This document shows, in pieces, positions 289-59,500 of a stretch of DNA of 64,000 nt; positions within the stretch are counted from its first letter, which is position 1, and every line of letters starts with the position of its first letter. This DNA is from Ascidiella aspersa. Its lineage: Eukaryota. The notes under the pieces were generated by a model. The model was not told the DNA's origin, did no database searches, and saw nothing but the letters and a program-made list of their open reading frames with translations. The position numbers and the translations under genes were made by a program. The stretch is taken from positions 6,448,001-6,512,000 of the forward strand of contig OZ004608.1 of NCBI GenBank assembly GCA_963924565.1, given 5' to 3'.

Positions 289-3200
289 TTACACCACGTC
301 TTGGTAAGCATCGTTGCTTGGTGATTGGTGGCCATCATTTGTTTGCCCATGCTGACTATTTTCGCCGCCTTCTGTCAGACCGGATGTCACTATTGAGCAT
401 TCACGGTGCTCAATATATCCCGCTTCATCTTGTACGACTGGTAACCGTGGATATGGTTGAACGCAGCCAGTTTCATCACCGTCGTCACTATTCCCTACAT
501 AAAAAAACAAAAAAATGAATTAAGCATTTTTTAAGGGTAAAGTGCTGTGTGTAATGACTGTCAATGACCTTAAGTGCACTTTTTTGTCACATTTTCCTAA
601 TGATTTAACTTGATTACGTCGTTTTGTTAAAATGATTCAAAATATTTTAGACAAATGACTTTACTTTACCTTACGCCATTAATTAAGTTTCTTGGTTTGA
701 AATTAAGGGTTTTACTTTTCTATTTTGCTATAGAATTGAGCTATTATTCTCAAGGTGTACGTGAAAAACCATTAAGTTGCTACATGCTAATATTTGTTGT
801 ATTAGTTAAATTATTGCTCATAATTGGACTAATTTAATTTTTTATCGTTTTAATATTATATTAGGGGTTGATATGATTGGCACATAAGTCTTTGGACACT
901 TGAGTGTGTTTTTTTCAAAAATGACTTGTTTACAACACTGGTAAAATGAAACGATTTTTTTGTAATTCTTACTTGGAACATTTATCGTTATTGAGCTTCC
1001 GGGGTTGAGTTCAAAGAGGCCTGCCTCATTCCGAATCACCGGTAATATGAGATTGGGCTGAACGTAGTCAGGGTCAACGAAATCGTTGCTATTTCCTGTT
1101 TAAATATTGGGCTTTACTTATTAGACAATATAAAGCAGGGGTTCTTAAACTGGGGTCCATGGACCCCTTGGGGGTCCGTGAACCAGTTTTAGGGGGTTCA
1201 TGAAAACCTAATTGAAATATTAGTGTATACTAATGAAGTAAACAATTGATAAACAAAACAATTTAATTCTGAATAAAACGGATTTTCACTGAATGTATTT
1301 AGACTTAATTTCACTTTCCCATTTTTGGACCGAAATCAGCAAACTTATAAAGTTTATTTGTACCGTGACGTCAATTTATGAACTTTTTTGCCTACAGTGG
1401 TCCATGCGAGCTAAAAGAAAATTTTGGGGTCCGCGGTAAAAAAACCTTAAGAACCCCTGATCTAAAGCAAATGCTTTTGGGCAAGTGCCACCACAAACTG
1501 AGACAAGGTCGATTTTAATACGTAAACGTTTAGTTTTTATTTTAACTCTGTGTTCCTAACCGGCAAAGTATTTTATAGTAGTGTATAAAAGAGTGAAAAT
1601 TTTCATACGTGAACATCAATAAAGTTACAGTTAAGTCTTCACTTTTTTAATGGAAACCTTTAACACCTTCGTCGCAAACAACCCCAGCACGATCGGTTGA
1701 GCATTAGTAGACATAGGCTTGACTCGACTGCGCAGTTTCCTATTAAGTGACGAGTGTCGGGAGCGGGACGTTAAAAAAGTGACAGAGATATGAAGACTGA
1801 ACAAAATAAAAAAATCTCCAAGAATTACTGAAATAAGGCAACATACCTAGTTGTTCGTTCGGTGTGAATCTAGCGGCGTTTTGAGTTCTTCTACAAAAAA
1901 AAACATTATTCATGTATAATTGAACATTATAAATTGGATCTAAGCTATATTGTTAAATCGGAATATGTTTCGTTTGTTGAAAGTTTTTCTTATCAATCAT
2001 GCAAGAAGTATTAAACAGGACTGCTGCGAATTCGAACTTTACTGGTTCAAAAATTCCACAAATCCGAAACGAATAAAGAAATTTCAAATATATGGGTGCA
2101 AACTAATTTTACATAAGATGAGTGTAAACGAACAAAAGGGTTTGGGTGCAGTGAATTTACATAAAATTGAAGTAGAAATGTTGCAATTTTTTTATAAATT
2201 GCTTTTTAATGTGTGTCGCGCGTATTTATTATCCGACCTTGCATACCGATAATTTGCAGCGTTTTAGAACAACCTCGTCAAACATTTTAAATCTTTAAAT
2301 CCCTTTCAAGAAAACTGTATGAATGTCGTACTTTTTGAGCCATTGGTGGAATTCGGGTAATTTGTTATTATGATACATTACATTGTTGACAAATAAAAAC
2401 TCGATACGCACTTTCCTGAAGTTATAATTGAATACAATTAAACTTAAGAAAAAAATCAAAATTGTTTGCCAAATTAAATTTGGAATGCTACTTTCAATTC
2501 TCAAAATGTCTTCATAGTCATGTAAGAGTAATAAATCGCTCTGTTTTATTTTTATATATAAACACCTAATACGTAAGCTGTGGACTTTCACTCACCTTAT
2601 ACAAATTCCAACCATCACTGTTACAAAACACAGTATTGCAACATTGACTACAGAAGCAGCCACAATAATGGTCGTAAATTCAGCTCTTTGTATACAAAAA
2701 TGTTTCTTGTAACCTGCAAGTTAAAGAAAATGAAGATCAGTTTAGAACAAGAACTAGAAATGTATCGCATTGCAGTCAAACAAATTGAAATATGACATTG
2801 TTATTACCTGTTGGTGTGAGTTCTTGTGTTTTTTCGAGGTGTTTCTCTCTATTCGTTATGCTTTCGGCATTCGTCAACGGTTCTGCTAACACAGCCATTG
2901 TTTTTAAATAAGTTTAGAGCACTGCTGCATATCATCAAACTTATTCGTTTATCATAACGAGTTTAAGGATTTTACAAATAAAACTCATGGATAAGGTGCA
3001 TTTATAGTTGCTGTATGTAAAACTTTTAAATATCAAAAGTCATATAGCTGTCGAAAATGTAATAATGTTGTGCTAATTTCCCTTTTTGTTTAAAAAGCGT
3101 GGGAATTTGTCCATGCTCCACAAAACCATATAATTTTCTTTTGTATCTATACGTAAATGCAAATTTGTTATCTGAATTAGGTTTCTATGTCTTAGCCCAT

Positions 3201-4185
3201 TAAAAAACGATTTAGCCGAAATGCGTCGGCTACCAATCGCAACAAAACAGAAAAAAAATATCGTGCTTTTGTGTTGCTTTGTGTAAATCAATAATATCTT
3301 TGTTTTGTTGCTTTTGATTTAAAAGTAACTCCTTCAACATAGTGTTTTAACAAAATAAACGAACTGTGTGGTATTCTTAAGGCTACTGGGTCAAGGATTG
3401 CTGAATTCATGGAAGATGGTTTAAAACTAAGTGTAATGCACCACCCACCAAAACGAGAAATATTTTGCACCCCTGCTGTAGGTTTGACAGAATAATTTCG
3501 TATTTCAAAGATAACTAAAAGAAAAATATCGAATTATTTTAAGTGTGCTCACTTGTGATAGGTGTAAGCTATAGAAGTTAACGTTAATCGATTTAATCAC
3601 CTTTAATTGAAATGCGTTTTTCTGTCATCAAAGGCGTTTCTAAAATATATAAGTGCTAATCAGAAAAAAATGAATCAGCTCTCACCAAATTTTCTCTGAC
3701 AAATGTACTTTTCCTTTCTACTGCATCGCATGTCAATCCATTTGTAGTCGGGACCACGTTCCATTGCTGCACAATCCTCACTGAACGTCAAATCATTCGG
3801 TTCTCCAGGAGCCCAATGTTGGTGATATAATCTCGTTCTATCCAACCATTGAAAGGTTTCGTTTGTATCCTTCCTCTTTAGTCCAATGTAATGAGTGCTT
3901 GCTTCATCTAGTGTGGAAATAAAACTAAGGTATTTTTATTATTATTTTGCGTCAGGGTCTATTACCTTCAGTTTTTCGTAAATGCGTTGCTAGAAACTTT
4001 TGAATTGATTCTGATTTAACAATTGCGAGTCTTCCGTACATTCTAACACAAGCTGAAGAAGCATCGTAAAAGTTTAACTTGTTTTTGGTTTCTATGAAAT
4101 ATTCCAAGTTGTCCAGACGATGCCAAACAGCAACAGAACTTTCGGCTGTCTTCAAAAGCACAAGTACTTTCAGAAACGTCCACAT
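289..4185 (-). CDS. Type I transmembrane C-type lectin receptor A1 (EPN-type CTLD, short stalk, QDEAGY-repeat tail)
   Basis: Exons with GT-AG and matching phases: 4185-3966 (MWTFLKVLVLLKTAESSVA signal + CTLD N-half), 3907-3686 (YIGL..WAPGEPND..C..WID..C), 2882-2808 stalk, 2713-2596 TM (TTIIVAASVVNVAILCFVTVMVGICIR), 1890-1847, 1095-973, 494-289 ending DAYQDVV*. Confidence 0.85.
1136..1459. mobile_element. hAT-like MITE
   Basis: TIRs CAGGGGTTCTTAA / TTAAGAACCCCTG, 8-bp TSD ATATAAAG/ATCTAAAG; empty site present in the B and C2 paralog introns (e.g. about 9106-9113). Confidence 0.85.
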
Positions 4186-6609: not shown

Positions 6610-8384
6610 GTATGTTCTTTAGTGTTAAATTGATGATTGAATATAAAATAGAAACGCTTTGTTATACATGTGGATATATTGCGTTTGTTTAACGCATTTG
6701 TTGCTTTTTGCTATTTTGAAAAAAAAAACATTTGCCGATTCGGAAATTTTGTGTTATAATTTGCCGAGTTACGCACGGCCCATTTTGGCTGATATGGTTC
6801 TTTCAATAAATATTCTGTTGCTACCAGGTATTGTATAATAAAACAAGTATTTGTGCTAAATATTTGTACACAAATATATACCAGAAGAACTTATTTTTTT
6901 TAAGGAATTATTTTCTACTAAAATACAAGATGTGAAAATAGTTATTCCAAAAAATTTCTGCTGCAAAATGTTGATTCGACTCCACTAGCAACACTGTATG
7001 ACCTTAATAACTTCCTAAATTTATGAAAACACATAATTCAAAAAGCTCAGTACATGGTTGCACAGGAAGAGAGAATATAAATTATAAAATGGAAATATTG
7101 TTTTATTTTAGATAACTAAACAAAAATTAAAGGATAAAACTTATGACAAACAGTGGAAAAACAAGTCGATATAATTTATCGCGCTTTAACTATAAATATT
7201 TACAAACATTTCTGCCCAATTTACATCAGATATAAGGATAATTATTCAACGAAACTTTGTATTGAACTACAACGGCGGTTGTCTTTTTCCTTGCTATGGC
7301 CTTGTAAATGGTGACGTAACCAGCGATAAAAATTAAATATTATTGATTGCTTATGTCATCGGCCAGAAACTTTTTTATCTCGGCACCAATTGATCTTTCA
7401 AGAGCTGTTGAAGGTCCACTACGTAAAACGAATGACGCCACAAAACCTTAAATCTGTAAGTAATCTTGCATGCCATGTAATGTGAAAAGGTACGTGTAGT
7501 GTGAAAAGTTATTTTATTTAATAAAAAGAATCCTTTGTAGCGATCATAAGTGACACGGCACAACATGTCATAGTATGTCTAGCGTCGTTGGCTTAAACGA
7601 TTTAATAAAGTATAGTTTTTGGTGCATGGCGAGCATGGTGGCCAGATGAAGCAACAATGAGCAAAAGTAAAAACACTCTTAGCCACACCATCAATTGTGT
7701 GAAAGCCATAAAGCCATTGCAAATTGTGTGAAAGCCATTGTATTTGCTGTCGGCTATTCCGGACGACACCGTTAGTCGCACATGTTTGAATTTTGACGCA
7801 CATATTGGCTTTCGCTTTTTGTGAATATATTTAACTAGCTAACAGTATACTCCTGACCTTATTTGTCGCGCGCCGAATTTAATCACTATTGAGAAAATTA
7901 ATCGATAAATCAAAAAATATTGCTAGAGTTTTGTAAGAATGAGTTGAAATGAACGTCAGGAAAATAATATTACATGGAAATATTCCATTACCGCACAGTT
8001 ATGTTTGCATACGAAACAAAAGCGTTGTACGACTCCCTTAAAAAAGTAAAAAAGGCCCACCATGGCACCTTGACCCACATTTTCAGGGCCAGCTATAAAT
8101 TACATGGGAGAACACTTTTGCGCCGCTTTTAAGTTCCAGAACTGAACCGTGGCCTATCGGCCAAACTCAATACAAGAGGACAATGTTATTTCATGTCAGG
8201 CGTCACTACTGCAAAATCGTGCGGCAGTGTCTATGACTATTTTATAACTATTAAAGTCCTGAGTGAATTTTACACTACGTCTTGGTAAACATCGTTGCTA
8301 GGTGATTGGTGGAGATCACTTGTTTCGCAACGTTGCCTATTCTGGCTATCCTCACAGCCTCTAAAGTCAGACCGGATGCCACTA

Positions 8385-11300
8385 TTAAGCATTCAGGGTG
8401 ATATATCCCGCTTCATCTTGTACGACTGGTAACCTTGGATTTGGTTGAAGGTAGCCAGTTTCATCAACGTCGTCACGGTTCCCTAATTAAAAAAACAAAA
8501 CAATAAAGCTTTCTTTTTCGGGTAAAGTGCAGTGTTGTAATGACTTAGGTCAATGACCTAACTTAAGTGCACTTTTTTGTCACATGTTTTAAATGATTTA
8601 ACTTGATTACTTCGTTTTGTTAAAATGACTCAAAATATTTTAGACCAATGGCTTTACCTTATGACATTAATTAAGTTTCTTGGTTTGAAAGTAAGGGTTT
8701 TACTTTAACATTTTAATATAGAATTGAGCTATTATTCTCGAATTTTGCTTGAAAAACCATTAGATTGCTACATGTTAATACTTATTTTTTAAGCTCATTT
8801 ATTGCTCATAATTGGGATAATTTAAAATATTTACTGGTTTATCGTTTTATTATTATTTAGTGATTAAGTTGACTAGGACTTTTTTGTCTTTCTAAAATGA
8901 CTTGTTTACAACACAGGTAAAGTGAAACGAAAGCTTTTGGGTAATTCTTACTTGGAACACTTATCCTCATTGAGCTTTCGGGGTTGAGTTCAAGGACGCC
9001 TGCCTCATCCCAAATTACTGGTAACATTATATTGGGCTGAACGTAGACAGTTTCAGCAAATTCGTTGCTATTTCCTATTTAAATATTAGGCTTTTATTAT
9101 TATACAATCTAAAGCGAATGCTTTTGGGCAAATGGCACCACAAACTAATAAAATGCCGATTTTAATATGTAAACGTTAATGGGTAAGGGATTGGAAATTT
9201 TCCAACATAAAGTCAAGAAATTAGGTCAAAATGTGACGTGACAAATCTAGTCGAACCTATGTAGCAATGGGGTGGTTTTCGATATATTCAACCAAATCGT
9301 GCTGGGATTGTTGTCCACAAGGCTGTTAAAATGTTCAAATCAAAACAGTGCTCACTAAAGTGCGTTTATTTTCACAGAATCTTAAATCAGAAATCACTAA
9401 AATGGAGAAGAAAAAAAACATCTAATGAAATAGAATCAATCAAATAAGGCAACATACCTATCTGCTCGCTTTCTCTGGATGTGTGTTCACTCCTTCTGGT
9501 CCTTCTATAGCAAATGACATTGATCAGGTGTAAATTAACTTTCTTATTCGGATCAAACTAGGCTTGGTAAGTCTGTCAATTGACCGGTCAAATACTCATA
9601 TTGGATTGAAATGTTGTAAATTTGAGTTTTTCATAATCTTGATTGTAACTTTTTTTAAACAATTTAATTATGAAATGGTAGGGTGTGTTGTGTTGTAATA
9701 ATAAATTGTTTTGCAAAGCAGATTTATTTTGTTTAGAATAAATGCAATTATATGATGAATCGCGTTAATCATAAAAGAAAACAATAGTTGGGGTATACCA
9801 CAATATGAGGCTTCTTAGAAATTAAGAAGAATCAATTGCCTTATCTGATGATTTAGAACAGGGTGGCCCAACTGCAGGCCCTTGGCCCGCGAGTTACGCT
9901 TTATTGGTCCGCGAACTGATAGTCAACTTACCTTACATCTAGCAATATCACTTTAATTGTTGTTTTTTTGTTATTGTAATTGACAAAAAAAACATTTTAA
10001 TGATCCTTTGCGAATTGTAGCACCACTAAGCAAAAGTGTATAATCTCACATGTAATGTAGCATTTATTTTATTGAGTTCACTTCATAAGCATATAGGCTA
10101 CGTATAAAGCAATAATCTTAAGAATCGCTATTTAAAAACATTGGCCCGCAAGATAAAAAAAATAAAAAAACAGTTTTTGGCCCGCAAGATAAAAAAATGT
10201 TTTTGGCCCGCAATGAAAAGATGTTGGACCACGCTGATTTAGAAGATTTAGAGTGACAAAAGTTGTGATGAGGAGTAAAAATATTTTTTACTGATGCATT
10301 TACTTGTTGTTAAATTGCGGTAATAATTTGTTGGCTTAACTTTGTGGTTGTAGTAATGGTAAAAATCACTACAATACTGCTATAGTATTGCTTGCAAGAT
10401 GGGCATGGTTTTACAAAAAAATCTTATTAATAGTTGCAAAATGATGGTTTTTGATTTACAAACCATTGTAATTAAGTCAAAACTTTCATATATTTATTTA
10501 AAGGTAAAATCAAGTTTTTGTTTTAACTTCAATTGCCTTATGATAGTGTGTATAGTATTTGACCTATATTTGACCTATTTGACGAGGATTGTATATGACC
10601 GGTCAAATGACAACCCTAGATCTAACCTAATATTATTTATTCGGATTATGTTTAGTTCGTTGAAAGTTATTCTTATCATGCAACAATAATTAAACAGGAC
10701 TGCTGCCAATTCAAAGTTTACTGGTTCTGATAAATTCCAATTATCCGAAACACATAAAAATATCAACAATTTGCATGCAACTGAATTTTAAATAAGGAGG
10801 AATGGGAACGAACACAGCGTTCAAGTGTAACAATCTGGAGTTAATTTACATGTGGAACTGAAAATAAATGTAGAAATGTTGTATGTTTATAAATTGCTTT
10901 TCAATGTATTCCGCGTATTTATTTTCAGAACCTGCTTACCTATAATTTGCAGCGTTTTCAATAAACGTCGACAATTATATTTTAAATCCCTTTACAAAAT
11001 CTCGCACTCATATTTTTTATTTTTTTTTTGAAGAGTAATGACGCAAAACACGATTCGTAAATGTGTAACAATATGCGAGACACCGTTGGGTCGTATGGTT
11101 TTAGACATAGCTTCTTGATTTGGCAAAACTGTATGTAGACTAAGTCTACGATTTGCATCGCTTCTGCCAATGAGCACTGCTAATTTGTACATTATGGTGC
11201 ACTTTACCAACCTTATGCAAAGCACGGCAATAACAATCACTGCACAGCAAAGCAGCACAACCCCGCAAATTGATGCTGCCAGTATGGTAGTTTGGTGCTG

Positions 11301-12741
11301 CGCTGCCTTTCCTGCTTCCAGTGTGTTGTCAACTGTAACACAGCAAGCTAAATTTATTATGTAGAGAGTTCATTCTAGCTACCAATGAAACTCTGCTTGC
11401 AAAATAGTCTAATTGTCCAATACCGTAGGATAATAAGGAGATATTGACTTATACCTAAGGATGAAATGCAAAGGTACCTGTGGAATAAGTTTGAGTGACG
11501 GTGCCAATGTTTGTTGTTATATTTGTTCCAAAATCGCCTTTGTTTTGATCTTTGAACAAAAGTAATAAATTTATAGAGTTTTACGAGTAACACATTTTTA
11601 ATCTTTATTGTCCCATCAACACGTAAAATACAATAAGGAGGACATTTGAGCATTTAGTGTTTTCGGAGGACCATTGAGTTTATTTAGAAAAGAGGGCATA
11701 TTATAGCCCTACCGTACTCATAAAGCATTCTATTTAATAACAACACAAACATTTCATATAATTTCCAAACTTATAAACGTTAACCGTAACTTAAATTAGT
11801 CAGTGAATAAATACTGCTGTTTGGAAAATTATAACGTTCGGGCCAAACGCTTAAAAATTGTGTTATTTAAACACTAGTAATTATTTTTGAGCAAGAGTTA
11901 CATTCGCTCATATCGTAAGATTTTTGTTTTTAGTCAACACTTTGAAATCGCATAGTATCTAAATACCGATATGGCGAATTAAGTACAACAGCAAACCTAC
12001 CTGTTGAAACGAGACTAGCTGTTGGAACATCGAACGTAGTTCGATCAATCTCACTTTTGGAGACATCAAATCCAACGTATGACGTTGAAGTTAACAAGTT
12101 TAATGATCTTTGTGTTGTTGATGACACAGCTGTGGTGGTAGTAGCTTCATCTATGTGTTAAGTCAAATAAATAGTCAAATGAAAATACACGTTATGCCTA
12201 ATTTCAGTTGATTTAAGTCGTGGCAGATTTTCTTACCAATTTTTCGTTGGCAAATGAACCCTTCTTTTCTATTGCACTGTATATCAACCCACAGATAGTC
12301 TGGGCCATCTTCCATAGCTCCGCACTTCTCGTTGTCAAAAATAGAGGCGCTTTCCTCGCCAGGGGCCCACTTGGTATAATTTAGAAGTGTCCCATCCCAC
12401 CATTTAAATTTTCCACCGGTTTTGTGTAATCCGATATAGTAAGTCTTTAGATTTCCTAAACAGCATCGAATTATTAAACAACGACATTTCGTGTAATTAT
12501 AGCTGTTGTGCGTTTTTATACCTTTGGTGCTGTTAAGTTGCTTTGCTAAGAAAACCTGAATATCGGGCGTGTCAACTTTCGCCAAAGTTCCATTCATTTT
12601 AACACAAGCATCCGAGGCTTCCTTAAAGTTAAGTCGCCTGCTTCTTTCGATATAGTATTCAAATTTACCATGCCGCTGCCAAAGAGCTGAAGAACTTTCG
12701 GCCAACGCAAACACAGTAAGGGTATAAACATACATCTGCAT
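8385..12741 (-). CDS. Type I transmembrane C-type lectin-like receptor B1 (non-EPN CTLD; tail ends in hemITAM-like QDEAGYITLNA*)
   Basis: Exons 12741-12522, 12455-12237 (WAPGEES..WVD), 12150-12001 S/T stalk, 11332-11212 TM (ILAASICGVVLLCCAVIVIAVLCIR), 9504-9458, 9074-8952, 8482-8385. Last exon has a 4-nt deletion relative to paralogs giving an early stop. Confidence 0.82.
9559..10618. mobile_element. Non-autonomous hAT-like element with a nested MITE (9859-10236)
   Basis: Subterminal inverted TGTCAATTGACCGGTCA / TGACCGGTCAAATGACA, TSD GATCAAAC/GATCTAAC, absent from the A intron. Inner element CAGGGTGGCCCAAC..GTTGGACCACGCTG has TSD ATTTAGAA. Copies also at about 48164-49170 and 59206-60263. 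Confidence 0.75.
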
Positions 12742-16863: not shown

Positions 16864-19593
16864 TTATACCATTTCGTTGCTAATTTCTGCCTGGTCCTTC
16901 TTGAATTTATCATACAAAGGATTAGCTACCATTTCGTTGCTAATTTCTGCCTGGCCATTCTTGAATTGATCATACAAAGGATTGGCTACCATTTCTTTGC
17001 TAGTTTTCGCAGGATCATTTTTGAATTTCTCGTATAAAGGATTTGTGACAATCTCTTTTTCGCCATTTGTTTCGACAGGCACTATGAAGCAAAAAATATT
17101 GTCATAAGTTGTTTATTAGTAAAGGTATGGCTAAGTTGTTTAATAGCAAACTACTAGTTAAGGGTGGTCCTCGAACGGATTCATATAACATTACGAAAAA
17201 AAGTTGATTAGCTCAGTTTAAACTTTTTTATAGCTACCATTAAAGCTCATCTGAAACGTAGTTCTTGTTTGGGCGCAATAACCGTTGTACTTTAAAATTA
17301 TTAAAAACTTGTTTCTGAATTCCGTAAATGACCAGTACAGAGTTTGTCTAACCTTTTGGTATTCCTGAATAAACCACTTGGCCTTCCAGGTTTATTCTTA
17401 AACCGGTTTTTGTTGGGTCTTCGTTTGTATTATCTGGAAGAAACAAACCAATTGTTTTGTAATACATTAACGTCTTGCAACGTACCTAATTCGCATACAT
17501 TAACCAAGCAACGTACCTAATTCGCTTTTTGCTGATGATGTAGACCGTTTTCGTGATTTTCTGCAAAGGCAAGACAAAATGTAAAAACAAAATCTTCCAA
17601 ATTTGATGCTAATCAATTTATATCTATACTGACTGTATAAAACCCTAACAGATGATATTTATTTCCTTGTCAGCAATATTTCTCCGCAAGTTTGTAAATC
17701 CTTGCAACCAAAAATAAATATGTTGGCTTATATAGAGCTTGAATAACTTATTTTTTCATTCGACTTTGTTTATATTACGTCACTTGGATTAGTTGAGTTT
17801 TATTAAAAATAAATTATTCAATTATTCACTATTTACTAATAAGTTCAAAGTGTAGTTAACTCGAAGAGTAAAATAAAACTACTGACACCAAGCTATTGAA
17901 AGAAAAAAAATTAGTTGCATTGACATTCATTCCTACAAATTCAGCCCCGGTTAACCAAATTCAGTTGCTGTCTGCCAGATCGTGATTCGCAAAACACGAT
18001 TCGTAGATGTGTAACAATATGCGAGACACTGTTGGGTCGTATGGTTTTAGACATAGCTTCTTGATTTGGCAAAACTGTATATAGACTAAGTCTATTAGCA
18101 TCGCTTCTGCCAATGAGCACTGCTAATTTGTACATTATGGTGTACTTTACCAACCTTATGCAGAGCACGGCAATCACAATCATTGCACAGCAAAGCAGCA
18201 CAACCCCGCAAATCGATGCTGCCAGTATGGTAGTTTGGTGCTGCGCTGCCTTTCCGGCTTCCAGTGTGGTGTCAACTGTAACACAGCAAGCAAAATTTAT
18301 TATGTAGAGAGTTAATTCTGGCTACCAATGAAACTCTGCTTGCAAAATAGTCTAATTGTCCAATACCGTAGGATAATAAGGAGATATTGACTAATACCTA
18401 AGGATTAAATGCAAAGGTACCTGTGGAATAAGTTTGAGTGACGGTGCCAATGTTTGTTGTTATATTTGTTCCAAAATCGCTTTTGTTTTGATCTTTGAAC
18501 AAAAGTAATAAATAAGAGTTTTACGTGTAACACATTTTTAATCTTTGTTGCCCCATCAACACGAAAAACACAAAAAAGGAGGACATAACTTATAAACGTT
18601 AACCGAAATTTAAATTAGTCAGTGAATTACTTCTCTCTATAAATATTTCTGTTTGGATAATTGCAACGTTCAGGTCAAACGCTTAAAAATTGTGTTATTC
18701 AAACACTAGTAATTATTTTTGAGCAAGAGTTACATTCGCTCATATCGTAAGATTTTTGTTTTTAGTCAAAGCCAACAATTAACCTCACCACTTTGAAATT
18801 GCATAAAGTATCTGAATACGGATACGGCGATTAAGCTGAACAGCAAACCTACCGGTTGGAACGGTACTGGCTGTTTGAAAATCGGAAGTAGTTTGTTCAA
18901 TCTTACCTTTGGAGACATCAAATCCATCGTATGACGTTGAAGTTAACAAGTTTAATGATCTTTGTGTTGTTGATGACACAGCTGTGGTGGTAGTAGCTTC
19001 ATCTATGTGTTAAGTCAAATAAATAGTCAAATAAAAAAACACGTTATGCCTAATTTTAGTTAATTAAAGTCGTGTTAGATTTTCTTACCAATTTTTCGTT
19101 GGCAAATGAACCCTTCGTTTCTATTGCACTTTATATCAACCCAAAGATAGTCTGGGCCGTTTTCCATAGCTCCGCAATACTCGTTGAACAAAATAAAGTT
19201 GATTTCCTCGCCAGGGGTCCACTTGGTATCATTTAGAAGTGTCCCATCCCACCATTTAAATTTTCCATCAGTATTCTGTAATCCGATATAGTAAGTCTGT
19301 GTGTTTCCTAAACAACATAGAATTATTAAACAACGACATTTCGTGTAAATATAGCTGTTGTGCGTTTTTATACCTTTGGTGCTGTTAAGTTGCTTTGCTA
19401 AGAAAACTTGAATCTCGTTCGTGTTAACTTTTGCCAAAGTTCCATTCATTTTTTCACAAGCAATCGAGGCTTCCTTAAAGTTAAGTTGCCTGCTTCTTTC
19501 GATATAGTATTCAAATTCACCATGCCGCTGCCAAAGAGCTAAAGAACTTTCGGCCAACGCAAACACAGTAAGGGCATAAACAAACATCTGCAT
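16864..19593 (-). CDS. Type I transmembrane C-type lectin-like receptor B2 (ITIM VVYSGI plus 3x NPLY tail)
   Basis: Exons 19593-19374, 19307-19089, 19002-18853, 18275-18155 (TM), 17560-17517 (RKSRKRSTSSAKSEL), 17433-17353 (..EGQVVYSGIPK), 17081-16864 (60-nt repeats encoding NPLY). All phases are compatible. Confidence 0.83.
16867..17052 (-). repeat. Coding 60-bp tandem repeat (3 x EMVANPLYDxFK..)
   Basis: Visible in both DNA and ORF 16864-17082. Confidence 0.9.
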
Positions 19594-38511: not shown

Positions 38512-41500
38512 TTACACCACGTCTTGGTAAGCATCGTTGCTTGGTGATTGGCGGCGATCATTTGTTTGCCCATGCTGACTATTTTCGGCGCCTTCAGTCA
38601 GACCGGATGCCACTATTGAGCATTCAGGGTGTTCAATATATCCCGCTTCATCTTGTACGACTGGTAACCTTGGATTTGGTTGAACGCAGCCAGATTCATC
38701 ACCGTCGTCACTATTCCCTAAATCAAAAACAAAAAAATGAATTAAGCATTTTTAAGGGTAAAGTGCGGTGTGTAATGACTGTCAATGACCTTAAGTGCAC
38801 TTTTTTTGTCACATTTTTCAAATGATTTAACTTGTTTACGTCGATTTGGTTAAATGATTCAAAATATTTAAGACAAATGACTTTACTTTACCTTACGCCA
38901 TTAATTAAGTTTCTTGGTTTGAAATTAGGGGTTTTACTTTACCATTTTGCTATAAAATTGAGCAATTATTCTCAAGGTGTACTTGAAAAACCATTAAGTT
39001 CCTACATGTTAATATTTGTTTTATTATAGTTAAATTATTGCTCATAATTGGACTAATTTAATTTTTTATCGTTTTAATATTATATTGGGGGTTGATATGA
39101 CAGGGACTTAAGTGTTTTTACACTTGAGTGTGTTTTTTTCAAAAATGACATGTTTACAACACTGGTAAAATGAAACGATTTCTTTGTAATTCTTACTTGG
39201 AACATTTATCGTTATTGAGCTTCCGGTGTTGAGTTCAAAGACGCCTGACTCATTCCGAATGACCGGTATTATAAGATTGGGCTGTACATAGTCAGGGTCA
39301 ACGAAATCGTTGCTATTTCCTGTTTAAATATTGGGCTTAAATTATTAGACAATCTAAAGCAGGGGTTCTTAAACTGGGGTCCATGGAAGCCTTGGGGGTC
39401 CGTGAACTAGTTTTAGGGGTTCATAAAAACCTAATTGAAATATTAGTGTATACTAATGAAGTAATCAATTTATAAACAAAACAATTTAATTAAAAACAAA
39501 ACGGGTTTTCACTGAATGTATTTAGACTTAATTTCACTTTCCTATTTTTGGATCGAAATCAGCAAACTTATAAAGTTTATTTGTACCGTGACGTCAATTT
39601 ATGAACTTTTTTGCCTACAGTGGTCCATGCGAGCTAAAAGAAAATTTTTGGGGTCCGCGGTAAAAAAACCTTAAGAACCCCTGATCTAAAGCAAATGCTT
39701 TTGGGCAAGTGCCATCACAAACTGAGACAAGTTCGATTTAAATAGGTAAACGTTTAGTTTTTATTTTAACTCTGTGCCCAACCGGCAAAGTATTTTATAG
39801 TAGTGTAGAAAAGAGTGAAAATTTTCATACATGTACATAAATAAAGTCACAGTTAAGTCTTCACTTTTTTAATGGAAACCTTTAACACCTTAGTCGCAAA
39901 CAACCCCAGCACGATTTCGGTTGAGCATTAGTAGACATAGGCTTGACTCGACTGCGCAGTTTCCTATTAATTGACGAATGTTGGGACGTTATAATAGTGA
40001 CAGAGATATGAATAAGGAACAAAAATAAAAAAATCTCCAAAGAATTACTGAAATATGGCAACATACCTAGTTCCTCGTTCGGTGTGAATCGAGCGGCGTT
40101 TTGAGTTCTTCTATAATAAAACAAACATTATTCATGTATAATTGAACATTTTATATTGGATCTAAGCTATATTGTTAAATCGGAATATGTTTCGTTTGTT
40201 GCAAGTTATTCTTGTCATGCAAGATGTATTAAACAGGACTACTGCGAATTCAAACTTTACTGGTTCAAAAATTCCACAAATCCGAAACGAATAAAGAAAT
40301 TTCAAATATATGGGTGCAAACTAATTTTACATAAGATGAGTGTAAACGAACAACAGGGTTTGGGTGCAGTGAATTTACATAAAATTGAAGTAGAGATGTT
40401 GCAATTTTTTTATTAATTGCTTTTTAATGTGTGTCGCGCGTATTTATTATCCGACCTTACATACCGATAATTTGAAGCGTTTTAGAACAACGTCGTCAAA
40501 CATTTTTAATCCCTTTCATGAAAACTGTATGAATGTCGTACTTTTTGAGCCATTGGTGGAATTCGGGTGATTTGTTATTATGATACATTACATTGTTGAC
40601 AAATAGAAACTCGATACGCACTTTCCTGAAGTTATAATTGAATACAATTAAACTTAAGAAAAAAATCAAAATTGTTTGCCAAATTAAATTTGGAACGTTA
40701 CTTTCAATTCTAAAAATGTCTCCATAGTCATGTAAGAGTAATAAATCGCTCTGTTTTATTTTTATATATAAACACCTAATACGTAAGCTGTGGACTTTCA
40801 CTCACCTTATACAAATTCCAACCATCACTGTTACAAAACACAGTATTGCAACATTTACTACAGAAGCAGCCACAATAATGGTCGTAAATTCAGCTCTTTG
40901 TATACAAAAATGTTTCTGGTAAACTGCAAGTTAAAGAAAATGAAGATCAGTTAAGAACAAGAACTAGAAATGTATCGCATTGCAGTCAAACAAATTGAAA
41001 TATGACATTGTTATTACCTGTTGGTGTGAGTTCTTGTGTTTTTTCGAGGTGTTTCTTTCTATTCGGTATGCTTTCGGCATTCGTCAACGGTTCTGCTAAC
41101 ACAGCCATTGTTTTTAAATAAGTTTAGAGCACTGCTGCATATCATCAAACTTATTCGTTTATCATAACGAGTTTAAGGATTTTACAAATAAAACACATGG
41201 ATAAGGTGCATTTATAGTTGCTGTATGTAAAACTTTTAAATGTCAAAAGTCATATAGCTGTCGAAAATGTAATAATATTGTGTTAATTTCCCTTTTTGTT
41301 TAAAAAGCGTGGGAATTTGTCCATGCTCCACAAAACCATATAATTTTCTTTTGTATCTATACGTAAATGCAAATTTGTTATCTGAATTAGGTTTCTATGT
41401 CTTAGCCCATTAAAAAACGATTTAGCCGAAATGCGTCGGCTACCAATCGCAACAAAACAGAAAAAAAATATCGTGCTTTTGTGTTGCTTTGTGTAAATCA

Positions 41501-46986: not shown

Positions 46987-49900
46987 TTAAGCATTCAGGG
47001 TGATATATCCCGCCTCATCTTGTACGACTGGTAACCTTGGATTTGGTTGAAGGTAGCCAGTTTCATCAACGTCGTCAATGTTCCCTAATTGAAACAAACA
47101 CAATAAAGCTTTCTTTTTTGGGTAAAGTGCAGTGTTGTAATGACTTAGGTCAATGACCTAACTTAAGTGCACTTTTTTGTCACATGTTTTAAATGATTTA
47201 ACTTGATTACTTCGTTTTGTTAAAATGACTCAAAATATTTTAGACCAATGGCTTTACTTTACCTTATGACATTAATTAAGTTTCTTGGTTTGAAAGTAAG
47301 GGTTTTACTTTAACATTTTAATATAGAATTGAGTTATTATTCTCGAATTTTGCTTGAAAAACCATTAGATTTCTACATGTTAATACTTATTTTTTAAGCT
47401 CATTTATTGCTCATAATTGGACTAATTTAAAATATTTACTGGTTTATCGTTTTATTATTATTTAGTGATTAAGTTGACTAGGACTTTTTTGTCTTTCTAA
47501 AATGACTTGTTTGCAACACAGGTAAAGTGAAACGAAAGCTTTTGGGTAATTCTTACTTGGAACATTTATCCTCATTGAGCTTCCGGGGTTGAGTTCAATG
47601 ACGCCTGCCTCATCCCAAATTACTGGTAACATTAGATTGGGCTGAACGTAGACAGTTTCAGCAAATTCGTTGCTATTTCCTATTTAAATATTAGGCTTTT
47701 ATTATTGGCAATCTAAAGCGAATGCTTTTGGGCAAATGCCACCACAAACTGATAAAATGTCGATTTTAATATGTAAACGTTTATGGGTAAGGGATTGGAA
47801 ATTTTCCAACATAAAGTCAAGAAATTAGGTCATAATGTGACGTCACAAACCTAGTCGAACCTATGTAGCAATGGGGTGGTTTTCGAAATATTCAACCAAA
47901 TCGTGCTGGGGTTGTTTTCGACAAAGCTGTTAAAAAGTTCAATTCAAAAAGTCCACACTAAAGTGCGTATATTTTCACAGTATCTTAAATCAGAAATCAC
48001 TGAAATGGAGATGAATAAAACAAATCTATACTGAAATAGAATTAATCAAATAAGGCAACAAACCTATCTGCTCGCTTGCTCTGGATGTGTGCTCACTCCT
48101 CCTGGTCCTTCTATAGCAAATGACATTGATCATATATAAATTAACATCTTATTCGGATCAAACTAGGCTTGGCAAGCCTGTCAATTGACCGGTCAAATAC
48201 TCAAATTGGATTCAAATGTTGTAAATTTGAGTTTTTATAATCTTGATTGTAACTTTATTATACAATTCAAATGTGAAATGGTAGGATTTTTTGTGTGGTA
48301 ATAACAAAGTGTTTGTAATAGCAAATTAGATTTATTTTGTTTAGAACAAATGCACTTATATGATGAATCGCGTTTTTCATAAAATAAAACAATATTTGGG
48401 GTATACGACAATCTGAGGCTACTTAGAAATTAAGAAGAATCAAATGCCTTATGTGAAGATTTAGAATAGTGTGGCCCAACTGCAGGCCCTTGGCCCGGGA
48501 GTTACGCTTTTCTGGCCCGCGAACTGATAGTCAGCTTAGCTTCCATCTAGCAATATCACTTCAATTTTTGTTTTTTTGTTATTGTAATTGACAGAAAAAA
48601 CTTTGTCAATTATCCTTTGTGATTTGTAGCACCACTAAGAAAAAGTGTATAATCTCACAGGTAATGAAGCATTTATCGTAATGCATTCACTTCATCAGCA
48701 TAGGCTATTTATAAAGCAATAAGCCTAAGAATCGCTATTTAAAAGCATTGGCCCGCGATGAAAAGATGTTGAACCACGCTGATTTAGAAAATTCAGAGTG
48801 ACCAAAGTTGTGATGAGGAGTAAAAATATTTTTTACTGATGCATTTACTGTTTTTAAATTGCGGTAATAAACTTGTTGGCTTAACTTGGTGGTTGTAGTA
48901 ATGGTAAATAATTACTTCAATAATGCTATAGGATTGCTTGCAAGATGGGCATGGTTTTGCAAAAAATCTTATTGATACTCACAAATAGATAAAATAATTG
49001 TTTTTGTTTTACAAATCATTGTACTTGAGTCAAAACCTTCATATATTTATTTAAAGGTAAAATCAAGTTTTTTTTAACTTCAATTGCATTATGTTAGTGT
49101 GTATAGTATTTGACCAATATTTGACCTATTTGACGAGGATTGTATATGACCAGTCAAATGCCCAACCCTAGATCTAACCTAATATTATTTATTCGGATTA
49201 TGTTTAGTTTGTTGAAAGTTATTCTTATCATGCAAGAATAATTAAACAAGACTGCTGCCAATTCAAAGTTTATAGTTGCAATAAATTCCAAAAATTCGAA
49301 ACACATAAAAACTATCAACAATTTGCATGCAACTAAATTTTAAACAAAGAGGAATGGGAACGTACAACAGCGTTTAAATGTAACATTCTGGTATTAATTT
49401 ACATGTGGAACTAAAAATAAATGTAGAAATGTTATATGTTTATAAATTGCCTTTCAATGTATTCCGCGTATTTATTTTCAGAACCTGACTGCCGATAATT
49501 TGCAGCGTTTTTAATCAACGTCGACAATTATATTTTGAATCCCTTTAAACAATCTCGCACTCATATTTTTTAAAAAGTAGCTCAGTGATGGAATGCGGGT
49601 AATTTATTATTTTTACACATTCAATTATTTACGAATAGAAACTCCATACGCACATTATTAAAGTTTGTTATTGGGATTGCATATAACAAATATAAAACTT
49701 AATCAAAAAAAGCTATGTTGTTAGCCAACTTAAAGTTGGGATGCCGAACTCATGTTAAAACGTTCTTTTAAAGTGTTGAGTAACAGATCGTTTTTGATTT
49801 CGATTTATACGCAAGTTGTGGACTTTCACTTACCTTATACAAATCAGAACCACCACTGTCGTTAAACATAGTATTACAAAATTGCCCACAGAAGCAGCCA

Positions 49901-51791
49901 CAATAATGATTGTAAATTCAGCTCTTGGTATACCAAAAGGCTTGTCGTCTACTGCAAGTTAAAGTGAATGAAGATCCGTTAAGAACAACAACTAGAAATA
50001 TATCGCAATATTTATTATTTTATACAGTCGGTGCTTTGCCGAATAATCAACTTAAATTGATTTACTTGGCACCGAAATTATGTACCTGATTTTGTGGATT
50101 CTTCAGTTATTTTGAGCTGATGGGTCACGTCCGTTGCTCTTACAGCGTTGTCCATATGTTCTTCTAATATAGCCGTTGTTATTGTTTACTAGTCTATTTC
50201 TTATTACGTAAAGCACAAACATGAAATTGGTAGCATATAGCTAAACTTAATTTTTATCTTAATGTCAAGGTAACCTGTTGAATTGTAGTGTACTGATTGA
50301 AATTCGACAGTTGTCGGAATGTTTGTCTTATATTTGCTAACAATTGATTGCGATGTATATTTGATAACAGTTGATTGCGATGTATATTTGCTAACAGTTG
50401 ATTGCGATGTATATTTGATAACAGTTGGTTGCGATGTATATTTGCTAACAGTTGATTGCGATGTATATTTGATAACAGTTGGTTGCGATGGTTGATGTAT
50501 CATTGCGTCGTTTGTCGGTTTGTTTCGCTCTGTAATAGAACTCAAAACGATATTTGTCATGGAGTTAGACCACCGTAGTAATTTTCATACGTGTATTTCG
50601 TTGTCTCACTCTATGAATCTACTGCCATGCAGCATGCACGTACACGCCCAGTACACGCCCAGTAGACGCGTTTCTCGCGTTGCTATTTCGCTAGCGTCCC
50701 GAAGGCGCAGTAATGAATGGTTTACGTTGGAATGGTAATTGCATTCTGCGCCCTATATAAACGTGCGTGTTATCCGTTCTTTCATTCCAATTCACTTCTA
50801 CGTCTATGAGCAATAAACCTTCTACGAATACACCATTTACAAACATTACAAATATAACAATTGAATAGACAGAAGAAAACCAAGTGAGACAATTATTATG
50901 CGGTAGGATTCTGGTTGTTCAAAAACCTTACCTATTTCGTGCCACAAACTAATAGTGTACTACTGTACTATAAAGTATTTGTGTTCTAAATGTAAGCTAC
51001 ACGCTGATGCCCAAAATCTATGTATCTTTATTCGCCTTAAAAAACGCTTTAAAACTTATTTATTAAAACAACATAAAGCGAGTAACCTGTAGACGTAAAG
51101 CGAGTTGATGAAGCTGCGATGTTTGTAAAACCAGTCGTCGTGATATCGCTGTTTGTTCCAGAAGTTGCCGTCTGAGTATTTAACTCATCTTGTGTTGAAG
51201 TGTGTGGTTCTGCAATCCAAATTATGTTAAACATGAGATGGTGGCATGTTAGTTTAAAAGCTTGAAATTCCTTACCGAAGTTTCTCTGGCAAATGTACTT
51301 TCTTTTTAAGGTGCATCGCAAGTCAACCAATCTGTATTCGGGACCACGTTCCATTGCTGCACAGTTTTCACTTTTCGTCAAATCATTCGGTTCTCCAGGA
51401 GCCCAATGTTGGTAATATAATTGCGATTCATCCAACCATTCAAAGTTTCGGTTTGTACCTATCCTCTTTAGCCCAATGTAATGAGAGCTTGGTGTGTCTA
51501 GAGTAGACATGAACTATAGGGTTTATACAGTACATTCTTGCTTAATAGCTTGAGACAGGGTTTATACTTACCTTCAGTTTTTCGTAAATGCGTCGCTAGA
51601 AACTTTTGAATCGATTCTGATTTAACAATTGCAAGCGATCCGTTTATTCTAACACAAGCCGAAGAAGCATCGTGAAAGTTTAGCTTATTTTTTGTTTCAA
51701 TGAAGTATTCCAAGTTGTCTAGACGATGCCAAACAGCAACAGAAAATTCTGCTGTCGTCAAAAGCACAAGTACACACTGAAGAATGTGCAT
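46987..51791 (-). CDS. Chimeric type I C-type lectin receptor C2 (C ectodomain, expanded stalk, A-like TM, hemITAM-like tail)
   Basis: Exons 51791-51572, 51497-51276, 51209-51087, 50529-50275 (27-nt repeats), 50163-50086, 49951-49834 (TM IIIVAASVGNFVILCLTTVVVLICIR), 48110-48064, 47679-47557, 47084-46987 ending QDEAGYITLNA*. Confidence 0.82.
50327..50490 (-). repeat. Coding 27-bp minisatellite (6 x SQ[P/S]TV[I/S]KYT) in the C2 stalk
   Basis: GTTGATTGCGATGTATATTTGMTAACA units; only 2 units in C1. Confidence 0.9.
50555..50835 (+). mobile_element. Probable solo LTR in a C2 stalk intron
   Basis: About 280-bp GC-richer insert absent from the C1 intron, TG..CA ends, internal TATATAAA and AATAAA; TSD not clear. 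Confidence 0.5.
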
Positions 51792-53127
51792 TTTAGCCTA
51801 ATTACAAACTCGATCTTACTAATTGCATCAACTCGAAACCCTGTATAACTGCAATGAAATCTTACACTTATTAACTTTTCACCTGGACCGCAGAACCTCC
51901 AAAAAAAAAACACATAACCATGCAATAACAAACGACTTGATGTTTCGTAAAAATGCTGTTTGACAAGTATTACAAATATAATGTAAGGTTAGCTCGATTC
52001 TACATTGGACTTTATTGTGCACTCATGAATAAAAACAATCCCTTGGTCAATATAACTTCTGTGACGCAATATGGTGTCTAACAATAAACATATTCATACG
52101 TAATTGACTTCGATTTATCCTTATGCAAATTCATATAAAAAGGCGTGATTGTGAAGAAGTGATCGTGCTAAAATAGAAATCAAAAAACGTCAAACCGAAA
52201 ACCAACGTTTGAGTTTACTGGGTGAATTTTTCTATTAGCTTTGATAAAAGCCAAACAACCTCTCATCGTTTGTCTTGCATATTTGCAAATTTATCATATC
52301 ACAACTGAACGAACGCAGCTATCTACAGCAAATACACAAGGCCTTTACACTTGTCGATTTATAATTTACACATGTTTGTTGTAGAGGCTAAATAAGTGTA
52401 GTAGTTTCACGAAGAAAGGGTAAGTTTTTTTTGTTGATTTTTGAACACAACTAGAAGAATGATGCAGCCTGAAACATTGAACGTTTCAGGATATAGCCTT
52501 GGAGTGCTTAGGGGTGTGCTAATTCAATTGTTTAGATTTAGAGGACTTAAATATTCACTACGACGTGGTTGTATCTTATTTCTTATCTGAATTGTTTACT
52601 TTAACTTAACCCATAGGTATATTCCGATTTTGATAGAACGTTAGACGCTTCTTACCATACATGAGAATTTATGCCCATGGGCAAGAAATGGAAAAGGCAT
52701 TTGGCGTGGCCGTTTCCCCCCTTAAGTGTAGTTTTTTCCGGTTTTACCTACATAAATGCAAGTTTTTTGCTGAACTCAAAAATTAAAGTTGTGGCAACTT
52801 AAACGATAAGGCCTTATTTGGCTTTGCTTAAATTGATAACATCTTTATATTAATAATTTTATATTGAAAGTAATCTTTATCTAACCGAAAAAAAAAAAAA
52901 ATAAAAATAAACGAATTATGTTTCTGCTCAACGTTTAACAGATTAATTTCGTATTTCAAATATAACTAAAAGAAAAATATCGAATTATTTTGAGTTTGCA
53001 AGCTTGTGATAGGTGTAAGCAGTATAAGTTAAAGTTAGTCGATTTAATGCACATTTTATTGAAATGCGTTGTTCTGTATTTAAAGACGTTTCTAAAATAT
53101 ATAAGTGCTAATCAGAAAAAAAATGAA

Positions 53128-56591: not shown

Positions 56592-59500
56592 TTACACTAC
56601 GTCTTGGTAAACATCGTTGCTAGGTGATTGGTGGCGATCACTTGTTTCGCAACGTTGCCCATCCTGTCTATTCTCACAGCCTCTAGTCAGACCGAATGCC
56701 ACTATTGAGCATTCAGGGAGCTCAATATATCCCGCTTCATCTTGCACGACTGGTAACCTTGGATTTGGTTGAAGGTAGCCAGTTTCATCAACGTCGTCTC
56801 TGTTCCCTAATAAAAAAACAAAACAATAAAGCTTTCTTTTATAGGTAAAGTGCAGTGTTGTAATGACTTAGGTCAATGACCTAACTTAAGTGCACTTTTT
56901 TGTCACATGTTTTGAATGGTTTAACTTGATTACTTCGTTTTGTTAAAATGACTCAAAATATTTTAGACCAATGGCTTTACTTTACCTTATGACATTAATT
57001 AAGTTTTTTGGTTTGAAATTAAGGGTTTTACTTTACCATTTAACTATAAAATTGAGCTATATACCTCGAATTTTGCTTGAAAAACCATTAGATTGCTACA
57101 TGTTAATATTTATTTTTTAAGCTCATTTATTGCTCATAACTGGACTAATTTAAAATATTTACTGGTTTATCGTTTTATGATTATTTAGTGATTAAGTCGA
57201 CTAGGAATTTTTGTCTTATTAAAATGACTTGTTTACAACACTGGTAAAGTGAAACGAAAGCTTTTGGGTAATTCTTACTTGGAACATCTATCCTCATTGA
57301 GCTTCCGGGGTTGAGTTCAAGGACGCCTGCCTCATCCCGAATGACTGGTAACATTAGATTGGGCTGAACGTAGTCAGTTTCAGCAAATTCGTTGCTATTT
57401 CCTAATTAAATATTAGGCTTTCATTATTAGGCAATCTAAAGCGAATGCTTTTGGGTAATTCTTACTTGGAACATTTATCCTCATTGAGCTTCCGGGGTTG
57501 AGTTCAATGACGCCTGCCTCATCCCGAATGACTGGTAACATTTTATTTGACTGAACGTAGTCAGTTTCAGCACATTCGTTGCTATTTTCTATTTAAATAT
57601 TAGGCTTTCATTATTAGACAATCTAAAGCGAATGCTGTTGGGCAAATGGCACCACAAACTGATAAAATGCCGATTTTAATATGTAAACGTTAATTAAGGA
57701 ATTGGAAATTTTGCAACATAAAGTCAAGAAATTAGGTCATAATGTGACGTCACAAATCTAGTCGAACCCATGTAGCAATGGGGTGGTTTTCGAAATATTC
57801 AACCAAATCGTGCTGGGGTTGTTTTCCACAAAGCTGTTAAAAAGATCAATTCAAAAAGTGCACACTAAAGTGCGTATATTTTCACAGAATCTTAAATCAG
57901 AAATCACTAAAATGGAGAAGAATAAAAAAAATCTACTGAAATTGAATTAATCAAATAAGGCAACATACCTATCTGCTCGCTTGCTCTGGATGTGTGCTCA
58001 CTCCTTCTGGTCCTTCTATAGCAAATGACATTGATCATGTATAAATTTACATTCTTATTCGGATCCTGTCAATTGAACGGTCAAATACTCATATTGAATT
58101 CAAATTTTGTAAATTTGAATTTTCATAATCTTGATTGTAACTTTATTAAACAATTCAAATGTGAAATGGTAGGATTTTTTGTGTGGTAATAACAAAGTGT
58201 TTGTAATAGCAAATTAGATTTGTTTTAAATGATTCAACTTGATTAAGTCGTTTTGTTTAAATGACTCCAAATATTTCAGACACGTGACTTTCTTTTACCT
58301 TATGACATTAATTCAGTTTACTTGGTTTGATATTAGGGTTTTATTCGACCATTTTACTATAGAATTGAGCTATTATTCTCGAATTGTGCTTGAAACACCA
58401 TTAATTAGATTGCTGCATGTCAATACTTCTTTTTTTGTGTGTTGATTTATTGCTCATAATTGGACTAATTTAAAATATTTACTGGTTTATCGTTTTATGA
58501 TTATTTAGTGATTAAGTCGACTAGGACTTTTTTGTCTTTTTAAATGACTTGTTTGCAACACAGGTAAAGTGAAACGAAAGCTTTTGGATAATTCTTACTT
58601 GGAACACTTATCCTCATTGAGCTTCCGGGGTTGAGTTCAAGGACGCCTGCCTCATCCCAAATGACTGGTAAAATTATATTGGGCTGAACGTAGACAGTTT
58701 CAGCAAATTCGTTGCTATTTCCTATTTAAATATTAGGCTTTTATTATTAGACAATCTAAAGCGAATGCTTTTGGGCAAATGGCACCACAAACTAATAAAA
58801 TGCCGATTTTAATATGTAAACTTTTATGGGTAAGGGATTGGAAATTTTGCAACATAAGGTCAAGAAATTAGGTCATAATGTGACGTCACAAATCTAGTCG
58901 AACCTATGTAGCAATGGGGTGGTTTTCGAAATATTCAACCAAATCTTGCTGGGGTTGTTTTCCACAAGGCTGTTAAAACGTTCAAATCAAAACAGTGCTC
59001 ACTAAAGTGCGTTTATTTTCACAGAATCTTAAATCAGAATTCACTAAAATGGAGAAGAAAAAAAACATCTAATGAAATAGAATCAATCAAATAAGGCAAC
59101 ATACCTATCTGCTCGCTTTCTCTGGATGTGTGTTCACTCCTTCTGGTCCTTCTATAGCAAATGACATTGATCAGGTGTAAATTAACTTTCTTATTCGGAT
59201 CAAACTAGGCTTGGTAAGTCTGTCAATTGACCGGTCAAATACTCATATTGGATTGAAATGTTGTAAATTTGAGTTCTTCATAATCTTGATTGTAACTTTT
59301 TTTAAACAATTTAATTATGAAATGGTAGGGTGTGTTGTGTTGTAATAATAAATTGTTTTGCAAAGCAGATTTATTTTGTTTAGAATAAATGCAATTATAT
59401 GATGAATCGCGTTAATCATAAAAGAAAACAATAGTTGGGGTATACCACAATATGAGGCTTCTTAGAAATTAAGAAGAATCAATTGCCTTATCTGATGATT

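Follow-up and report, generated by a model that had tools for sequence, protein, structure and literature searches.

Paired receptor families such as KIR, Ly49 and PIR combine activating and inhibitory members, with short tails derived from long ones through truncating mutations, and they evolve by birth-and-death and by unequal crossing-over; that tail truncation creates alternative receptor forms is well known in these families. The vertebrate hemITAM receptors CLEC-2, Dectin-1 and DNGR-1 are type II lectin-domain receptors with a lone YxxL in an N-terminal motif, which in human CLEC-2 reads QDEDGYITLN. The hemITAM consensus is DEDGYxxL (PMC11484026), also given in the form [DE][DE][DE]xYxxL (PMC11484026, PMC12582321), the motif of CLEC-2 is YITL (PMC7404283), and a glycine at position -1 relative to the tyrosine keeps Dectin-1 activating and not SHIP1-recruiting (PMC12669754). 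Among ascidians, the type I FcoR receptors of Botryllus schlosseri carry a hemITAM, a core-1 motif (YxxI/L/V) and a C-terminal core-2 motif ([A/D]VYxxV), with premature stops bringing about the swap between ITIM and hemITAM (PMC12582321).

The locus described here is a window of 64,000 nucleotides from the 308-Mb assembly of the ascidian Ascidiella aspersa (positions 6448001-6512000 of contig OZ004608.1, written as contig C2 in the coordinates below and distinct from the gene C2), and it lies within a 175-kb cluster of type I C-type-lectin receptor genes. The original prediction was that a 4-nt deletion in the last exon of two of these genes, B1 and C2, creates the tail end QDEAGYITLNA, a 9/10 match to the CLEC-2 hemITAM, and that an apparently pseudogenizing frameshift may have been a gain of function. 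Our preferred reading, to which we give a probability of about 0.6, is that the deletion gave rise to a short-tail cassette with a hemITAM-like SH2 docking site, which was spread by recombination and is probably functional; this figure and the lower odds expressed in words for two alternatives below refer to overlapping readings and do not sum to one. As in KIR, Ly49 and PIR, near-identical ectodomains are found with long or short tails, but the transmembrane span of the short form lacks the charged residue that an adaptor would need, and the short tail has a tyrosine motif of its own. The resemblance to FcoR is that both are ascidian type I receptors, clustered and copy-number-variable, with tails mixing hemITAM-like, core-1 and core-2 motifs (PMC12582321). 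However, the FcoR ectodomain is of the immunoglobulin type whereas the A. aspersa cluster has C-type lectin domains and so falls outside the Ig superfamily, and the FcoR switch operates via alleles and intron retention whereas here there is a germline 4-nt deletion that resides in separate genes and has been moved by recombination.

Organisation of the receptor genes

All of the genes under study are on the minus strand. Three sequence types of lectin domain, A, B and C, can be told apart in the window from the open frames and from Pfam scans, and exons of all three score above the curated cut-off for PF00059 (Lectin_C; 22.6 bits), at 54.9 bits for the B1 exon and 52 and 43.5 bits for the A-type and C-type second exons respectively; searches were run exon by exon. 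A word-indexed protein search with the B1 lectin-domain frame returned no match at E<=1e-10. The EPN motif (WAPGEPND) is kept in the A-type (3678-3935) and C-type (51052-51513) lectin domains, whereas the B-type domain (12178-12741) has EES in this position, and because of this replacement the B-type heads may lack canonical calcium-dependent sugar binding.

Behind the lectin domain come a stalk rich in Ser and Thr, a transmembrane exon without charged residues, a juxtamembrane exon of 47 nt with the consensus RTRRSEHTSRxSEQI, one or more 123-nt exons encoding NSNEFAETVYVQPN..LPVI.DEAGVLELNP..., and the last exon. Splice sites are canonical with phases in the order 2, 1, 1-1, 1, such that the reading frame of the last exon is fixed regardless of the number of 123-nt exons. 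The N-terminal signal peptide, together with RRTRR past the hydrophobic span, indicates that these are type I receptors with the cytoplasmic tail at the C-terminus. In B1 the signal peptide and lectin domain form an open frame at 12178..12741, probably with a short in-frame intron; the transmembrane exon is at 11212..11332 (a hydrophobic span without charge, then RRTRR), the 47-nt juxtamembrane exon (RTRRSEHTSRESEQI) at 9458..9504, and the 123-nt tyrosine exon (YVQPN...DEAGVLELNP; phase 1-1) at 8952..9074, paralogous in frame to the long last exon. The coding part of the B1 last exon (8388..8486) begins at the phase-1 acceptor ttaattag/GG and contains 31 full codons, NRDDVDETGYLQPNPRLPVVQDEAGYITLNA. 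The corresponding parts of C2 are the signal peptide, lectin domain exons and stalk start (51052..51797), a transmembrane exon of another type than that of B1 (49834..49954), a 123-nt tyrosine exon (47557..47679) and the coding part of the last exon (46990..47084), all likewise on the minus strand.

There is considerable variation around this plan. B3 (56592-59151) has the 123-nt tyrosine exon in triplicate and the 47-nt juxtamembrane exon in duplicate, and since a 47-nt exon after a 123-nt exon shifts the frame into a stop, it cannot use all of its tail exons in one transcript. A third tail type with three tandem NPLY-containing repeats is found behind B-type lectin domains in three genes of the cluster, at window positions 16867-17112 (B2) and at C2:6514557-6514793 and C2:6604800-6605045. 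The C-type stalk (50207-50584, and in paralogues) has a tandem 9-residue repeat of the form TSQSTVSKY whose copy number varies among paralogues. High-copy repeats occur in the B1 introns at 8492-8655 and 10132-10623, where read and contig depth is 10-40x that of the surroundings; the repeat at 8492-8655, a palindromic element immediately 5' of the last exon, is conserved in 16/16 copies.

Origin and spread of the short last exon

On the reverse complement, QDEAGYITLNA followed by a TAA stop is read at 8385..8420 in B1 and at 46987..47022 in C2, as predicted, and when the window's five last exons are aligned both prove to lack 4 nt found in A1 (289..494) and A2 (38512..38717), which read GYIEH ... 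DAYQDVV-stop, and in B3 (56592..56806), which reads GYIEL ... DVYQDVV-stop. In B1 the gap falls between 8402 and 8403 (GGATATAT/CACC). The long copies do continue to YQDVV-stop, over 41-44 further codons, and what is left of this old long frame in B1 (8270..8384) now lies past the stop. A search of the whole assembly recovers 16 copies of the last exon, all within C2:6.42-6.59 Mb. Six are short with the same 4-nt gap (L001, which is B1, L002, which is C2, and L003, L006, L007 and L016) and end in YITLNA or YITLNV and a stop; the other 10 are long, nine with YIEH and one, B3, with YIEL, and end in YQDVV-stop.

An assembly or sequencing artefact at 8402/8403 has in its favor that the depth of DNA run X6 is about 2 at the B1 site, with most reads merely 95-99% alike, which is too low for the direct verification in raw reads that had been proposed. 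However, six paralogues differing by 4-9% around the site have the identical gap, which excludes an assembly slip; the context of the gap is not homopolymeric, and contig runs X1 and X2 both span the B1 bin with no 4-nt insertion listed. We thus regard an artefact as extremely improbable.

The direction of the change is apparent from the 123-nt exon, which is paralogous to the last exon within the same gene. In the DNA alignment its ...GAACTCAACCCCGGAAGCTCAATGAGG is in frame with the long form, ...GAGCTC---CCTGAATGCTCAATAGTGG (ELNPGSSMR versus EL-PECSIV), and the long frame is therefore ancestral. Moreover, removal of TGAA from L004, a long copy (YIEH-PECLVV...), yields exactly NRDDVDETGYLQPNPRLPVVQDEAGYITLNA-stop, the short peptide, and the resulting DNA differs from B1 at 3/96 nt, two of the differences being synonymous and one a TAG versus TAA stop. 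The deletion is thus derived, as had been supposed, and does not reflect an insertion in the long copies. QDEAGYI is already present in 16/16 copies, such that the deletion supplied only T, L and N; it happened once, in a gene of the YIEH type belonging to the B-tail lineage (GYLQP), and made the short form. B3 acquired L at +3 along another path, one substitution of its own having turned YIEH into YIEL. We also considered the LN of the short form as an ancestral reading, given the ELNP of the 123-nt exon, but rejected this; since in the DNA it is the long form with which that exon shares its frame, the match at LN is a coincidence. Among 1.84 billion proteins, a profile built from 17 tail exons found no tail homologue, its four weak matches being unrelated DEAG-containing repeats, and this search therefore gave neither an outgroup to date the deletion nor any usable cross-species conservation.

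The six short tails are located behind two B-type and four C-type lectin domains and three kinds of transmembrane exon. In a tree of the 1-kb 3' flank, short and long copies are interleaved and a single short clade is rejected (AU p 3e-82); a tree from 620 nt upstream does not resolve the relationships, and L006 has a long branch owing to an intron insertion. A 250-nt sliding comparison shows B1 switching its nearest relative. Upstream of 9300, B1 is 98-100% identical to B3 across the juxtamembrane and transmembrane exons, the stalk, the lectin domain and the 5' flank, whereas downstream of 9050, over the stretch that runs from the 123-nt tyrosine exon through the last exon into the 3' flank, it is closest to C2 and L003 (96-99%, versus 93-95% for B3). 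The junction zone, 9050..9300, is inside the intron from the juxtamembrane exon to the 123-nt exon. B1 thus arose very recently, by a recombination that joined a B3-type head to a short-tail module of the C2 type, and because B1 changes its nearest relative at 9050-9300, what it shares with C2 reflects a tail swap after the deletion. The original prediction, that the deletion has been kept in two genes with different ectodomains, is correct as to the ectodomains (B-type and C-type) but not as to independent retention, since the B1 tail was swapped in; its accompanying caveat, that the sharing could follow duplication after the deletion, was essentially right, with a C2-like gene as the source of the B1 tail.

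The preferred account of the short tails is as follows. A single TGAA deletion arose in the last exon of an L004-like gene within this young cluster of type I C-type-lectin receptors, changing the end of the tail from ...QDEAGYIEH-(~40 residues)-DVYQDVV-stop to ...QDEAGYITLN[A/V]-stop. Intronic recombination then carried a module, which starts with the 123-nt tyrosine exon and takes in the shortened last exon as well as the 3' flank, to at least three kinds of transmembrane/ectodomain heads. The module is now present in six genes, of which two have B-type and four C-type heads, the newest being B1, with its B3 head and C2-type tail. The short tail is most likely translated and used as an alternative signalling tail, in which the new C-terminal YxxL would dock SH2 proteins; the site is hemITAM-like in that it keeps the G at -1, along with two of the acidic residues where the consensus has three. 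The outcome is near-identical heads with different tails, as in B1 and B3.

Integrity, constraint and expression of the short-tail genes

In all six short genes the transmembrane, juxtamembrane, 123-nt and last exons are open, and each of the six preserves the AG/GT splice sites with phases 2, 1, 1. Stops within the lectin-domain hits are intronic with the exception of one true nonsense codon in L007, and 5/6 of the short genes are intact across all recognised exons. A stop in the last exon is not expected to provoke nonsense-mediated decay, and as the short-tail stop is within the last exon no such decay is expected here. Damaged copies are found in both classes: L007 (short tail) has its nonsense codon in lectin-domain exon 1 (C2:6579824-6580060), L015 (long tail) has a premature stop ahead of YQDVV (L015:1537-1704), and in L009 the AG of the last-exon acceptor is replaced by TG (C2:6551950).

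These observations bear on the alternative that the frameshift is neutral or mildly damaging in a birth-and-death family, that unequal crossing-over and conversion spread it, and that the likeness to CLEC-2 is due to chance. Recombination is rampant in the cluster and the damaged copies fit this view, as do the findings that 7/10 of the CLEC-2-matching positions are older than the deletion and that 31 open codons in six young copies are not unlikely by chance. The intactness of five of the six genes and the expected escape from nonsense-mediated decay point the other way, as does the pattern of substitution. Among the short copies, the 31 retained codons have 4 non-synonymous versus 6 synonymous events as counted from the alignment (binomial p 0.010), with a pN/pS of 0.16 for the part 5' of the indel site and zero non-synonymous events in a 24-residue core, TGYLQPNPRLPVVQDEAGYITLN; the last residue of the tail varies (A31V). 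Averaged over pairs of copies, the retained coding part has diverged less (0.039) than the introns (0.062-0.064) and the 3' flank (0.069), and the abandoned frame has diverged most (0.089). The sole frame-breaking indel in any copy is a +2 insertion shared by B1, C2 and L003 that lies past the new stop (8270..8384 in B1), and a 9-nt indel is the only one among the long copies.

This pattern fits a translated and constrained short tail with the old frame released, but the signal is modest, because the family is young, synonymous variants may have been imported by conversion from long copies under selection, and Fisher tests on the variable sites mostly fell short of significance. In favor of neutrality, constraint is weak even in the long extension (pN/pS 0.68), and setting this value against the 0.47 of the abandoned frame in the short copies was not discriminating. 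We consider a neutral or mildly damaging frameshift rather unlikely but a serious rival, and favor the reading of a probably functional, recombination-spread short-tail cassette.

Confirmation of the short-tail transcripts in RNA had also been proposed, and this check gave a negative answer within its scope: in one run (X7, ~7.8 million reads, ~6% sampled) there are no reads on the exons of B1 or B3, and the RNA reads land only on the intronic high-copy repeats. This argues against strong expression of B1 and B3 in that one sample without settling the matter, and the lack of reads on the B1 exons counts toward a neutral frameshift and against the preferred reading.

Tail motifs and candidate signalling partners

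The short tails have three tyrosines, in YVQP, YLQP and YITL, whereas the long tails have YIEH or YIEL and a C-terminal [V/A]YQDVV. The deletion therefore both makes a YxxL from YIEH and takes away the distal YQDVV, and the loss may matter as much as the gain. The B-type long end, DVYQDVV-stop, conforms to the core-2 motif and the short end, YITL, to core-1, with the A-type long end, DAYQDV, one residue off core-2; the long tail has no canonical ITIM because there is a D at -2 of YQDV. B1 and B3 resemble paired receptors in structure, with 99% protein identity in the lectin domain, 100% in the stalk and 99% in the transmembrane exon, and yet a short YITL tail in B1 versus a long YIEL...YQDVV tail in B3.

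The short tail is like those of vertebrate hemITAM receptors in several respects. There is a single YxxL (YITL) in the last exon of a lectin-domain receptor, 3' of the hydrophobic transmembrane exon and the RRTRR stop-transfer sequence, preceded by acidic residues and with a glycine at -1. The match to the human CLEC-2 10-mer is 9/10, as predicted, and its YITL part is documented for CLEC-2 (PMC7404283). The run of three acidic residues at -4 to -2 is incomplete, DEA replacing the DED of the vertebrate motif as the original prediction cautioned, and the A at -2 is present in 16/16 copies. Moreover, CLEC-2, Dectin-1 and DNGR-1 are type II with the motif at the N-terminus, whereas the ascidian receptor is type I with a frameshift-made motif at the extreme C-terminus. 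Because of this type I topology, and the origin of the motif within the cluster by a lineage-specific frameshift of YIEH, common descent with the tails of the vertebrate type II NKC receptors does not apply, and on these sequence grounds the likeness to CLEC-2 is attributed to convergence or chance and not to homology.

Two intronless genes encode proteins with tandem SH2 domains and a tyrosine kinase domain whose best full-length solved relatives are SYK and ZAP-70, with products of 601 aa (L036:1119-2921, corresponding to C1:3416118-3417920) and 606 aa (L037:1123-2940, corresponding to C1:31715622-31717439). Both SH2 domains have an FLVR-type arginine. The SH2 domains are about 10 residues apart compared to about 53 in human SYK, from which we conclude that they lack the helical interdomain A found in vertebrate SYK. 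A complex prediction for residues 1-220 of L036 (the tandem SH2) with the 31-residue tail gave no verdict for or against binding (score 0.00, in a run without controls). The proposed Syk-family partner therefore has a counterpart in the genome, and its binding to the short tail is putative.

A stronger proposal is that the deletion was a gain of function yielding a true hemITAM, which would be phosphorylated, recruit a Syk-family kinase and make the receptor activating in the manner of CLEC-2 and Dectin-1. The change of YIEH to YxxL, the D and E at -4 and -3, the two Syk-like genes with their FLVR-type arginines, the separate YIEL route to L at +3 in B3, and the near-identical heads of B1 and B3 with different tails are all consistent with this, as are the G at -1, shared with activating Dectin-1 (PMC12669754), and the record of hemITAMs in ascidian type I receptors (PMC12582321). 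However, the acidic residue at -2 is missing, the lack of interdomain A in the local Syk-like kinase means that the docking geometry is not inferable, and expression was not seen in the one RNA run. In addition, with YQDVV also lost, the net effect on signalling is not readable from the sequence, and residue frequencies give an estimate that a random frameshift would yield L or I at +3 about 1 time in 7. We consider a true hemITAM unlikely on present evidence. Still more doubtful is the full scenario in which one 4-nt deletion made a working C-terminal hemITAM and intronic recombination dealt this activating cassette onto several ectodomains, giving paired receptors that would signal through a Syk lacking interdomain A. 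What the preferred reading adds to the demonstrated deletion, with its polarity, copy number, mosaic history and intact exons and splice phases, is inference: that the tail is translated and phosphorylated, which SH2 protein it would bind and in which direction it would signal.

Motif swapping via premature stops has been described previously in the ascidian Botryllus (PMC12582321). The novelty of the present case lies in the route taken, in which the loss of 4 nt in the germline leads to a CLEC-2-like end and recombination spreads this end as a cassette on lectin-domain receptors. If the frameshift is neutral, the locus is a clean case of tail shuffling in a birth-and-death receptor family and no more. 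If the short tail signals, the cluster would offer a stepwise view of an innate receptor family gaining alternative signalling tails, in which a frameshift makes a new motif and deletes an old one and intronic recombination then distributes the tail as a cassette; the YIEH, YIEL and YITL states are all still side by side in one genome. Should the motif be a working hemITAM, it would be an independent and datable origin of CLEC-2/Dectin-1 signalling logic outside the vertebrates, and a signalling short tail would make this a system for testing whether Syk-type single-YxxL signalling predates the vertebrates or arose convergently.
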